A stretch of 64,000 nt of DNA, taken from the NCBI GenBank assembly GCA_004764695.1, contig SMSO01000035.1:62001-126000 (forward strand), given 5' to 3'. This DNA is from Schizochytrium sp. TIO01. Taxonomy: Eukaryota > Protista > Bigyra: Labyrinthulomycetes. Each line of letters opens with the position of its first letter. Positions within the stretch are counted from its first letter, which is position 1. The notes beneath the pieces were generated by a model that was given only the letters and a program-made list of their open reading frames with translations, searched no databases and was not told the origin of the DNA. Shown here piece after piece: positions 1,598 to 8,064 of this stretch. The translations under genes and the position numbers were made by a program.

Positions 1598-4500
1598 TTA
1601 TTTCAATATGTAAGGGCCTAGACATCCCAATGTTGCACGAAAGGCAACGTTTGCAGCTTCCAGCAAATCAAGCTCTACTTTCTGCGCAGCAAGATAGTCC
1701 TCTTTCGAACTCAGCAAACCAGAGCTGTTAGCAGGCCAAGCTTGTGTAAGAATACTAAGCTTCACTGAAAACGGTAGAGAAAGTGCATCGTTTACAACAT
1801 GTATACAACGAAGCTCACGAGAGATCTGCTCAAGTCTTGTCCTTCTTGTGTTTGCATAATAAATCTCTTCATTCAATTTCAGCTCCCTCTGTCCTTCATG
1901 GCCCAATCTAAATCTAAGACTTAGCAGACCAAATAGCATCATCTCCGTTCGTCAGTTAACAATTGAACCTCATCTAAGGTACCAAAGGAATGATAGTACA
2001 ATTTAATTTCTCCTTTGATGCGGTCATGCTCTCTGTTGCATCCACCCCAACCAAACAAGCAAAAACAGAATCAAACGAACAAGCAATCGAGTAAACTTGC
2101 TAAACAAAACTGGACAAAAAAAACACCAACCCACCCACCAACCAACAAAGCAAGGACCATGTACAAAAACGTCTTTGAGCTGCGGTGTTGCGTAATCAAC
2201 TTACTCTATTTCTCCCAACGACCAGTTCACTTTCAGTGCCGCACCCACTGCCTCGGCGCCCTCGTCGCCGATATCGTTGTCATCAAGCCTGTCGATTTGA
2301 TGGAACGATGGCAAGCATTACATTACATTGCATTATACGCACGCATGCATGCATGGACGTGAGTGATCTAGGTTGGCTTTCAGCATTTATCTTTGTTGTG
2401 TTGTCATTTTGCTCTTTGTTCGATGGATGTATACTCACTCAAACAGACAACTCATCCATCCATCCATCAAACAAACAAGCGATTGCATAAACTTGCAAAA
2501 CAACACCGACCCACCCACGAAACAACAAACCAAGCATCATATACAAACAAGTCCACGAGCTGCGGTCTTGCGTAGACAACTTACTCTATTTCTGCCAACG
2601 ACCGGTTCTCTTTCAGCGCCGCAGCCACTGCCTTGGCGCCCTCGTCGCCGATATTATTTTCAGAAAGACTGTCGAGTTGATTCAATGATGGCAAGCAATA
2701 CATTACATGTTACATATTACAATAGATGCACGCATGCATGCATGGACGTGAGTGATCTAGGTTGGCTTTCAGCACTTATCTTTGTTGTGTTGTCATTTTG
2801 CTCTTTGTTCGATGGATGTATACTCACTCAAACAGACAACTCATCCATCCATCAAACAAACAAGCGATTGAATAAACTTGCAAAACAACACCGACCCACC
2901 CACGAAACAACAAACCAAGCATCATGTACAAACAAGTCCACGAGCTGCGGTGTTGCGTAGACAACTTACGATAGTGATGTCAGCGACCGGTTCTCTTTCA
3001 GTGCCGCAGCCACTGCCTTGGCGCCCTCTGAGCCGATATCGTTGTCTTGAAGACTGTCGATTTGATTGAATGATGGCAACCAATACATTACACGTTACAT
3101 ATTACAATAGATGCACGCATGCATGCATGGACGTGAGTGATCTAGGTTGGCTTTCAGCATTTATCTTTGTTGTGTTGTCATTTTGCTCTTTGTTCGATGG
3201 ATGTATACTCACTCAAACAGACAACTCATCCATCCATCAAACAAACAAGCGATTGCATAAACTTGCAAAACAACACCGACCCACCCACGAAACAACAAAC
3301 CAAGCATCATGTACAAACAAGTCCACGAGCTGCGGTGTTGCGTAGACAACTTACGATAGTGATGTCAGCGACCGGTTCTCTTTCAGCGCCGCAGCCACTG
3401 CGTTGGCGCCCTCGTCGCCGATATCGTTGTATCTAAGACTGTCGATTTGATTAAATGATGGCAAGCAATACATTACACATGACACATTACATTAGATGCA
3501 TGGACGTGAGTGATCTAGGTTGGCTTTCAGCATTTATCTTTGTTGTGTTGTCATTTTGCTCTTTGTTTGATGGATGTATACTCACTCAAACAGACAACTC
3601 ATCCATCCATCAAACAAACAAGCGATTGAATAAACTTGCAAAACAACACCGACCCACCCACGAAACAACAAACCAAGCATCATGTACAAACAAGTATACG
3701 AGCTGCGGTGTTGCGTAGACAACTTACGATAGTGATGTCAGCGACCGGTTCTCTTTCAGCGCCGCAGCCACTGCATTGGCACCCTTGTTGCAAATATTGT
3801 TGTGACCAAGACTGTCGATTTGGTTGAATAATGGCAAGCAGACATTGCACATTACACATTACATTAAATGTACGCATGCATTTATGGACGTGAGTGATCT
3901 AGGTTGGCTTTCAGGATTTTATCTTTGTTGCGTTGTCATTTCGCTCTTTGTTCAATGGGTGCATACTCAGCCAAACAGACAACTTATCCATCAAACAAAA
4001 AAAACAAAACAAGCGATTCCATAAACTTGCGAAAAAACACCGACCAAAATAACACACCAACGAAGCAAGGCTGCCGGGTTGCGTAGACAACTTACGATAG
4101 TGATGTCAGCGACCGGTTCTCTTTCAACGCCGCAGCCACTGCCTTGGCGCCCTCTGAGCCGATATCGTTGCCTTGAAGACTGTCCATTTGATTGAATGAT
4201 GGCAACCAATACATTACACGTTACATATTCAATAGATGCACGCATGCATGCATGGACGTGAGTGATCTAGGTTGGCTTTTAGGGCTTCATCTTTGTTGTG
4301 TTGTCACTTTGCTCTTTGTTTGATGGGTGCATACTTAGTCGAATAGACAACTTATCCATCCATCAAAGAACGAAGAAAGAGACTGCATAAACTTGCAAAA
4401 CAACACCGACCCATCCACCAAATAGCAAAGCAAACATCATGTACAAACAAGTCCATCAGCTGCGCTGTTGCGTAGACAACTTACGAAAGTGATGTCAGTG

Positions 4501-7500: not shown

Positions 7501-8064
7501 CAAACAAAAACCGATTGCATAAACTTGCTAAACAACACCAACCAAAGCACCATTCAACAAAGCAAGCATCATGTACAAACAAGTCCATCAGCTGCGGTGT
7601 TGCGTAGACAACTTACTTGAGTGATGTCAGCGACCGGTTCTCTTTCAGCACCGCAGCCACTGCCTTGACGCCCTCGCCGTCGATCTGGCTGAAAATAAGA
7701 CTGTCGATTTGATTGAATGATGGCAAACAAGACATTACACATTACACATTAGATACATCCGTGGACATGAGTGATCTAGGTTGGCTTTCAGGATTTCAGC
7801 TTTGTTGTGTTGTCATTTTAATGCATAATCAATAAAGCAAGCAAGCAAGCAAGCAAGCAAGCAAGCAAGCAAGCAAGCAAGCAAGCAAGCAAGCAAGCAA
7901 GCAAGCAAGCAAGCAAGCAAGCAAGCAAGCAAGCAAGCAAGCAAGCAAGCAAACAAGCGACCGACCGAGCGACCGACCGAGAGTACCATGTTAACTTACT
8001 TCAATCGTGTAGCGCCATTCCGAAGCTGCTCAAGGGCATCGACAACATCTGGGTGGTCTGACAT
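1598..8064 (-). CDS. Multi-exon leucine-rich-repeat protein (RI/NLRC3-type 28-aa LRRs), 17 exons, about 548 aa
   Basis: Exon 1 is 8064-8000 (ATG, MSDHPDVVDALEQLRNGATRL). Fifteen 84-nt exons, each flanked by CAG and GTAAGT on the minus strand, lie at 7617-7700, 7258-7341, 6853-6936, 6448-6531, 6046-6129, 5648-5731, 5260-5343, 4874-4957, 4485-4568, 4096-4179, 3728-3811, 3355-3438, 2970-3053, 2585-2668 and 2205-2288. All are phase 2 and stop-free, with consensus LxxNxIGxEGAKAVAAALKENRSLTSLx. The probable last exon is 1919-1598: it starts T-CTT like the LRR exons, has an AAG acceptor with CTGAC upstream, and joins the 1598..1942 ORF in frame. The last junction is less certain than the others. Confidence 0.9.
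2130..7820. repeat. Tandem array of ~370-405-bp exon+intron units (15 LRR exons)
   Basis: Blocks such as GCATGCATGGACGTGAGTGATCTAGGTTGGCTTT and GCTGCGGTGTTGCGTAGACAACTTAC recur every ~385 bp. Units 4180-4568 and 4569-4957 appear identical. Confidence 0.97.
7837..7952. repeat. (GCAA)n microsatellite, about 29 copies, in intron 1 of the LRR gene
   Basis: Directly visible. It follows the point where the repeat-unit intron sequence breaks off (~7820). Confidence 0.97.

Follow-up and report, generated by a model that had tools for sequence, protein, structure and literature searches.

We analysed a stretch of 64,000 nucleotides (the window) from contig SMSO01000035.1 of the labyrinthulomycete Schizochytrium sp. 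TIO01 (assembly GCA_004764695.1, positions 62,001–126,000; G000:C34:62001-126000 in our numbering). At window positions 1598–8064 lies a leucine-rich repeat (LRR) gene that has the outward appearance of a satellite. Tandem Repeats Finder (TRF) reports a tandem repeat at 2117–7819 with a period of 389 bp, 14.8 copies and 83% matches. The minus strand is the coding strand of the gene. Using a script, we found exactly 15 stretches of 84 nt between ACTTAC and CTG on the plus strand; their plus-strand starts are the first coordinates of the 15 LRR exon lines below. On the coding strand, all 15 exons have a GTAAGT donor and a CAG acceptor, and all 15 are free of stop codons in the frame beginning at base 2. 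Therefore, all introns have phase 2, which makes each exon symmetric. The 17 exons joined by the script give 1647 nt and a frame of 548 aa in which the sole stop is terminal. The frame is made up entirely of 21 aa, 15 LRRs and a 106-aa tail. Nothing is missing from the germline copy: it has a start codon, 15 in-frame LRR exons, a tail, a TAA stop codon (1598–1600) and a poly(A) signal, AATAAA, which overlaps the TAA. Thus, the 385-base "satellite" is a 17-exon gene of an LRR protein, as the initial annotation had claimed, and the splice-bounded open exons, the capping exons and the 548-aa frame bear this out. The array it had described (15 stop-free, phase-2 exons of 84 nt between CAG and GTAAGT, each encoding one 28-aa LRR) was recovered by the script. 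The first and last exons, which had been called unique, are unique within this gene, but each recurs in dozens of paralogues. The features are as follows; the LRR exons rest on the exon scan and translation, and joints are exon–exon joints in public sequencing runs (such as X1), described below.

1598–1919, minus strand: last exon (322 nt), helical C-terminal domain of ~106 aa (sequence, translation, AlphaFold2)
1920–2204, minus strand: last intron, outside the 385-bp unit, acceptor ambiguous (sequence)
2205–2288, minus strand: LRR exon 15, terminal type KVNWSLGEI
2585–2668, minus strand: LRR exon 14
2970–3053, minus strand: LRR exon 13
3355–3438, minus strand: LRR exon 12
3728–3811, minus strand: LRR exon 11
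4096–4179, minus strand: LRR exon 10 (also unit comparison)
4485–4568, minus strand: LRR exon 9, unit 99% identical to the next unit (also unit comparison)
4874–4957, minus strand: LRR exon 8 (LRR_6 E 2.5e-4; RI-like PDB chains E 1.4e-11)
5260–5343, minus strand: LRR exon 7, a joint ends exactly at 5260
5648–5731, minus strand: LRR exon 6, joints end exactly at 5648
6046–6129, minus strand: LRR exon 5, joints end exactly at 6046
6448–6531, minus strand: LRR exon 4
6853–6936, minus strand: LRR exon 3, terminal type ending KVNWSLAEI though internal
7258–7341, minus strand: LRR exon 2, X1 exon–exon joints end exactly at 7258
7617–7700, minus strand: LRR exon 1 (84 nt, phase 2), atypical
7701–7999, minus strand: intron 1, holds a (GCTT)n microsatellite (sequence, TRF)
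8000–8064, minus strand: exon 1 (65 nt), ATG and 21-aa N-terminal cap plus 2 nt, then GTAAGT (sequence, translation)
8540–8658, plus strand: 5S rRNA gene (Rfam, 96.5 bits), divergent from the LRR gene

The last acceptor can be read in three ways. Three in-frame AGs allow the last exon to start at 1919, 1913 or 1907, and the predicted protein therefore has 548, 546 or 544 aa. The spliced transcript of a relative, P0005, agrees in length with the acceptor at 1919, and the aligned acceptor of a paralogue locus (L020) corresponds to 1913. The microsatellite of intron 1 is a perfect (AAGC/GCTT)31 at 7835–7958, and a (CAAA)n run lies at 7125–7151. Every intron of the array (e.g., 2289–2584) has a local hairpin. 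The folding energies of the introns are within the range of shuffled controls (z −0.8 and −0.2), and we rejected the proposal that they form exceptional inverted repeats by which exons could be looped out.

To characterise the predicted protein, we searched with single exons or with naturally occurring relatives from databases (P0002, P0005, P0009). The consensus of the repeat is SLQGNDIGSEGAKAVAAALKENRSLTSL. Each of the 15 repeats has 28 aa and shows the LxxLxLxxN(x)L core and the G/A/L-rich helix-forming segment of ribonuclease-inhibitor-like (RI-like) LRR_6 repeats. Single exons match Pfam LRR_6 (PF13516) with E-values of 2.5e-4 to 2e-3 (0.19 for LRR exon 1, 7617–7700), and every such match is under the 23.4-bit cut-off because one exon spans only 15 of the 24 profile positions. 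Compared with the PDB, a lone exon finds an RI-like chain with E 1.4e-11, NOD2 with 1.4e-7 and ribonuclease inhibitor with 4e-3; the relative P0009 matches RI-like LRR structures with E 1e-32 to 1e-10. In the AlphaFold2 (AF2) model of P0009, the LRRs have a predicted local distance difference test score (pLDDT) of ~80 and one strand and one helix per 28 aa. The strand takes up positions 27-28-1-2-3-4-5-6-7, and the helix begins at position 9. The LRR_6 and PDB matches agree with the class that the initial annotation had named (RI-type, 28 aa, 84 nt), and it was also right that this class differs from that of the brown-algal ROCO genes with their 72-nt exons.

Outside the repeats the protein has few recognisable features. 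The N-terminal 21 aa are hydrophilic, and no signal-like hydrophobic segment was seen in them by eye; no membrane anchor is visible in the predicted protein. The protein, of ~548 aa, is probably cytosolic. Exon-by-exon Pfam searches found no GTPase, as had been stated, nor any other known domain. The frame holds no NACHT or NB-ARC domain that would make the protein an NLR, and no ROC-COR GTPase follows the LRRs; the only non-LRR part is the 106-aa tail, for which the Pfam search gave no family. Only four cluster representatives among 1.8 billion proteins match this C-terminal domain, and searches of metagenome contigs and viral contigs with its alignment gave no relative. AF2 models it as three long helices with pLDDT 70.6 and a predicted template modelling score (pTM) of 0.34, which is a weak and simple model. 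The motifs ELRC, AAN and LG.Y of the tail are invariant across divergent family groups.

The variation between the repeats is concentrated in a few codons. We aligned 41 distinct units (an exon and the intron that follows it) from this gene and 15 short paralogue loci. It turned out that each exon has five hypervariable codons, namely 1 (split), 3, 4, 6 and 9, in the beta-strand and the adjacent loop. The strand and helix boundaries of the P0009 model place the variable residues on the face of the strand and the neighbouring loop. Nucleotide diversity at the 14 hypervariable sites is 0.58, as against 0.097 in the introns and 0.04–0.05 in the framework, that is, the rest of the exon. This contrast supports the diversified repertoire of binding proteins that the initial annotation had put forward. 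Within this gene alone, the hypervariable sites have a diversity of 0.57 and the other two site classes 0.08 and 0.13. Sites with a diversity of at least 0.5 make up 13 of the 84 exon positions and 1 of the 301 intron positions (Fisher p 1.3e-8), and the framework is less diverse than the introns (Mann–Whitney U test, p 4e-5). In the 24 pairs of units whose introns are at most 3% apart, 49% of the hypervariable sites differ, compared with 2.4% in the framework and 2.2% in the introns. Among 53 distinct exons there are 51 different combinations of the five codons, in which Q, S, G, Y, D, N, R and E are frequent.

The gene belongs to a large family. A genome search with the last exon gave 101 matches; about 70 of them are at least 65% identical, 95 of the 101 contain no stops, and the closest is 85% identical. 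The 389-bp unit has at least 388 matches (28 of 114 candidate regions), and the first exon with its 5′ region at least 40, which are 87–99% identical (82 candidates). These counts answer positively the search for paralogous arrays that had been proposed; judging from such matches, the genome has about 100 copies of the gene. By pairing the coordinates of first and last exons in 33 paralogues, we obtained spans of 2.2–11.2 kb, which correspond to ~4 to ~27 units (median 13). The introns of this gene are 87% alike on average and up to 98–100%. Their mean distance is 13% within the gene and 11% to units on other contigs. The unit of exon 3355–3438 is 1.4% away from a unit on contig C36, and near-identical introns occur on different chromosomes. 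The adjacent units at 4096 and 4485 are 99% identical and are a recent tandem duplicate. The terminal-type LRR (KVNWSL..EI) stands also at the third repeat, and the last repeats of paralogues have the same ending; this suggests a trace of past unequal exchange. Over evolutionary time, exons have evidently been skipped, duplicated and swapped, as unit number varies, some duplicates are recent and exchange takes place between chromosomes. The symmetric design, in which all LRR exons are 84 nt and phase 2, does permit this in frame for any exon, as the initial annotation had pointed out. At the paralogue L020:1166-1255 (G000:C36) the last LRR exon is followed by GCAAGT in place of GTAAGT, which points to a GC–AG intron, and at G000:C35:2636449-2642917 a first exon and a long 385-bp array have no tail exon of Group 0 (the repeat group described below) listed nearby. 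Another kind of C-terminal module may therefore close some of the arrays.

The gene lies in a ribosomal DNA (rDNA) region at a chromosome end. The contig (C34) opens with telomere repeat, and the gene is ~64–70 kb from the telomere (contig position 63.6–70.1 kb). According to Rfam, a 28S-5.8S-18S unit lies at 12.0–17.5 kb of the contig, 5S genes at 34.2 and 46.8 kb, and a second 28S-18S unit at 54.1–59.6 kb. The LRR gene lies between an 18S gene (C34:57849-59636), 4 kb past its 3′ end, and a 5S gene (C34:70540-70658). A preprint on Aurantiochytrium limacinum describes repeats named LORE-TEARS, whose Group 0 consists of ~9 copies of a ~385-bp unit, located between the 18S gene and the 5S gene closest to it; they are called spacers without similarity to GenBank sequences, with a possible role in chromosome-end maintenance (bioRxiv 10.1101/2023.06.15.545109). 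Our gene likewise lies at a chromosome end, flanked by the 18S and the closest 5S gene, and is built of tandem ~385-bp units, ~9 or more per array; it therefore corresponds to Group 0. The difference is that the preprint sees spacer repeats, while we read them as the exons and introns of LRR genes. On this reading, the ~385-bp spacer repeats between 18S and 5S are the exon–intron units of an LRR family. The initial annotation, which had described a single hidden gene, missed this context: the gene is one of about 100, it is subtelomeric, it lies in an rDNA spacer, and it belongs to a large family published as spacer repeats. In a literature search, the term LORE-TEARS appeared in no other paper, and no paper linked Aurantiochytrium with such LRR genes.

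We then looked at splicing in public runs, which were available as short assembled Logan contigs and whose kinds (RNA or DNA) were guessed. The contig mapping covered 6000 nt, which took in the last exon except for its final 122 nt and did not reach exon 1, and 872 of the 1104 mapped X1 contigs fit two places in the window. In the RNA-like run X1, and partly in X7 and X3, joints end at the donor side of 84-nt exons (5260, 5648, 6046, 7258 and 7617). When the inserted letters are added to the joint position, the acceptor end of an exon is reached (2652+16=2668, 3429+9=3438, 4949+8=4957, 6926+10=6936). The DNA-like run X19 has no exon–exon joints of this kind. The joints carry 7–16 letters unlike the local hypervariable sequence; because these letters are foreign, the joints show exact-register splicing of paralogues and not of this copy. 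As regards this copy, there are mismatch-free contigs within its last exon and its last LRR exon, and X1 and X7 contigs stop exactly at the predicted donor at 2205, where X19 reads through. Exon-only contigs are several times deeper than intron-only contigs in X1 and similar in X19, though contig depth is an unreliable measure. For this particular copy, splicing is thus only suggested. Transcripts of the family are found in MMETSP, and they match this genome at only 84–91%. In the transcript open reading frame (ORF) P0005, the last LRR exon is joined directly to the tail; P0002, P0006 and P0009 have several LRRs in one frame, and in P0002 and P0006, as in P0005, the C-terminal domain is attached to LRRs. 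Pieces of ~30 aa from P0002 map to this genome exon by exon. Spliced transcripts of family members exist.

The closest match in mode of operation, not in descent, is the HNWD family (het-d/het-e) of the fungus Podospora anserina, in which repeats are exchanged within and between loci, vary in number and have four surface codons under diversifying selection (PMC1805685, PMC2873952, PMC4986451). As in these repeats of high internal conservation, and in fungal NLR repeats generally, near-identical units are exchanged here, their number varies, a few surface codons (four or five) are diversified, and the repertoire is inherited. Unlike them, where WD40 (or ANK/TPR) units stand in one exon joined to NACHT, the units here are LRRs, each with an intron, there is no NACHT, and the genes are about ten times more numerous; repeat-induced point mutation (RIP) does not apply. 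Similar in design is the brown-algal LRR-ROCO family of Ectocarpus and Saccharina, with one LRR per phase-2 exon of 72 nt, exon shuffling and positive selection on the concave face (PMC3341825, PMC11378527). Both systems have one LRR per exon, equal exon length and phase 2, tandem exon duplication and shuffling, variable and selected surface residues, a stramenopile host and a proposed role as immune receptors. They differ in the repeat (72 nt/24 aa, GxxPxxLxxxxxLxxLxLxxNxLx, in the algae; 84 nt/28 aa, RI-type, here), in the rest of the protein (a ROC-COR GTPase in the algae, a family-specific helical tail here) and in genome organisation, since here the introns are near-identical family-wide and the genes lie in subtelomeric rDNA spacers. 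Splice variants are annotated in the algae; none is evidenced here.

Two further systems share the repeat or the principle. The LRR domains of RI, of NLRC3, NOD2 and the NLRPs, and of LRRC34 have the same 28-aa pattern, LxxLxLxxNxIGxxGaxxLaxaLxxNxxL, the same alternation of strand and helix as the P0009 model and the same intracellular type. The genes of RI and of vertebrate NLRs also have exons that match whole repeats. Unlike these proteins, ours has no signalling domain of the NLR kind, a far more uniform framework and a far more variable surface. The variable lymphocyte receptors (VLRs) of lampreys and hagfish have incomplete germline genes that are assembled somatically from flanking LRR cassettes. 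Like them, the present family combines LRR cassettes with hypervariable concave-face residues in what may be a repertoire of binding proteins. The difference is that the germline copy of this gene is already whole and open and belongs to another LRR class, and neither a signal peptide nor a membrane anchor is visible in it.

Taken together, we favour the reading that the gene is an intact representative of a large, inherited family whose hypervariable RI-type LRR proteins are encoded by rDNA-spacer repeats; we put its probability at about 0.72. The repertoire would be inherited and would arise because paralogues are numerous, units pass from locus to locus and selection is diversifying. In such a scheme, diversity would build up over generations: unequal crossing-over would alter the number of units, exchange or gene conversion between chromosome ends would disseminate them, and diversifying selection would hold the five codons different. 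The near-identical phase-2 introns could serve as homology for exchange, with rearrangements staying in frame, and each gene is probably spliced constitutively. The product would be a 15-LRR horseshoe followed, in one protein, by the constant helical C-terminal domain with a probable assembly or output role. In each repeat, the five residues of the beta-strand face and of the loop beside it may contribute to a gene-specific binding surface. The proteins are likely to recognise variable ligands, whether in an immune-like role (e.g., against the mirusviruses reported for Aurantiochytrium) or in self/non-self discrimination.

Several points weigh against this reading. The analysis of family variation was limited to 41 distinct units. 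The third positions of the framework are no more diverse than the first and second (0.041 vs 0.053) and are below the introns. The conservation of the framework may therefore be in part homogenisation at the DNA level and not protein-level selection alone. The letters inserted at the RNA joints do not match this copy. The copy itself is relatively divergent, as its closest last exon is only 85% identical, and it lies at the inner of the two rDNA units. Finally, a recognition or immune role is suggested by analogy with the systems compared above.

The first alternative is that this single locus gives many proteins within one organism by alternative splicing or by somatic rearrangement between the near-identical introns, as the initial annotation had supposed. 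It has some attraction: as the 15 LRR exons share phase 2 and a length of 84 nt, any subset of them stays in frame, the introns are 87% alike on average and at best 98–100%, and splice variants are annotated for the brown-algal ROCO genes, which are built in this way too (PMC11378527). The contigs also show joints that link exons of the window which are not neighbours. But these joints carry paralogue-specific letters together with a framework common to hundreds of exons, their placement is ambiguous, and adjacent exons of other copies explain them; we rejected them as signs of exon skipping. The DNA-like run X19 is without such joints. The perfect GTAAGT donor and CAG acceptor in every intron favour constitutive splicing, and the introns do not fold beyond the shuffled controls (z −0.8, −0.2). 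The germline gene is complete and open, and ~100 complete paralogues already give diversity. We found no evidence for a repertoire from alternative splicing or DNA rearrangement and consider this alternative unlikely. The diversity that can be demonstrated is inherited, with ~100 paralogues of 4–27 units each and nearly every exon having its own five-codon set. Slightly less likely still is a dedicated diversification device within the organism, whether by choice or skipping of exons, by mitotic recombination between introns or by a process targeted at the five codons. If there were such a device, clonal lineages would carry different sets of receptors, and the system would be a protist analogue of adaptive or VLR/DSCAM-like diversification.

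It is just as unlikely as alternative splicing or rearrangement at this locus that the gene is real but encodes a housekeeping RI-like LRR protein of the rDNA, the nucleolus or chromosome ends (a scaffold like RNase inhibitor, LRRC34 or RanGAP) in which the variable residues are simply unconstrained. The best PDB relatives do include LRRC34, ribonuclease inhibitors and axonemal LRR proteins, the genes lie within rDNA units, and the published view ties the repeats to chromosome-end maintenance (bioRxiv 10.1101/2023.06.15.545109). However, unconstrained sites should be as diverse as the introns (0.10), and we observed 0.58, with 49% difference where the introns differ by 2%. The variable sites are also limited to the strand and loop face, and ~100 intact paralogues with their own residue combinations are not a housekeeping pattern.

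Another possibility is that the hypervariable codons result from targeted mutation, i.e., programmed hypermutation or templated micro-conversion. The distribution of diversity gives some reason to consider it. The peak site diversity, 0.74–0.75, is near-maximal and is reached only 1–3 nt from invariant sites. The third base of Leu codon 28, which is synonymous, has a diversity of 0.68 and is as variable as the split codon after it, and synonymous sites of the framework are unusually conserved. But this third base is tied to the next two bases in a few recurrent triplets at the end of the 84-nt exon (e.g., window 2205–2207), CAA, ATC, TGT and TGA (permutation p < 0.0005), and codon 9 is mainly TCA (18) or GAC (16), which differ at all three bases. 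Such recurrent triplets and the two forms of codon 9 look like old variants that have been reshuffled, not like fresh random mutation. Among the hypervariable codons themselves we saw association only for the pairs 3-4, 3-9 and 4-9 and for the exon-end triplet, with the little power that 53 exons give. No candidate enzyme or template was identified, and we regard targeted mutation as very unlikely. Least probable, and strongly disfavoured, is the view of the LORE-TEARS preprint (bioRxiv 10.1101/2023.06.15.545109) that these are non-coding structural spacers at chromosome ends with fortuitous or decayed reading frames, since 15 of 15 exons are open with perfect splice signals, the gene has its start codon, its stop codon and a poly(A) signal, no stop interrupts 95 of the 101 last exons, the diversity is codon-specific, RNA-like runs have exon–exon joints, transcriptomes have ORFs, and the homology to RI-like LRRs is significant.

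The surroundings of the gene contain further features. The 5S gene is 476 bp upstream of the LRR start codon, with a short divergent control region common to both. The first part of the contig (C34:1-62000, L013-L019) holds two complete 28S-18S units, three 5S genes, three tRNA genes and LRR or tail exons of other family groups, e.g., at 19145–19435 and 31179–31486; more family copies lie inside the contig at 2.81–2.96 Mb. Past the 5S gene in the window, two overlapping ORFs (9953–10751, minus strand) match a resolvase N-terminal domain (E 1.1e-8) and, weakly, an OrfB/IS605 helix-turn-helix (E 0.007), which fits an IS607/Fanzor-like element. A 1550-aa ORF at 11802–16454 (minus strand) has an NPHP3_N (NACHT-like) domain at residues 371–553 and many WD40 repeats; this NLR-like ORF is a separate gene, 4 kb from the LRR gene. 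The ORF at 22079–22792 has a weak match to TIR_2 (E 0.0076).

Thus, the gene is real and is an ordinary member of an unusual family. Published chromosome-end "spacer repeats" are reinterpreted here as protein-coding genes. A heterotrophic stramenopile, itself a model host for mirusviruses, would thereby gain a large hypervariable LRR repertoire that comprises ~100 genes with probably over 1000 LRR exons. Brown-algal ROCO genes and fungal NLR repeats have come independently to one design, and this family would be the third to do so: near-identical units are exchanged between loci and a few surface codons are kept different. What is new here is that the intron lies within the repeat unit and that rDNA units at almost every chromosome end hold such genes. 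Whether subtelomeric rDNA serves as a recombination platform for recognition genes thereby becomes testable.

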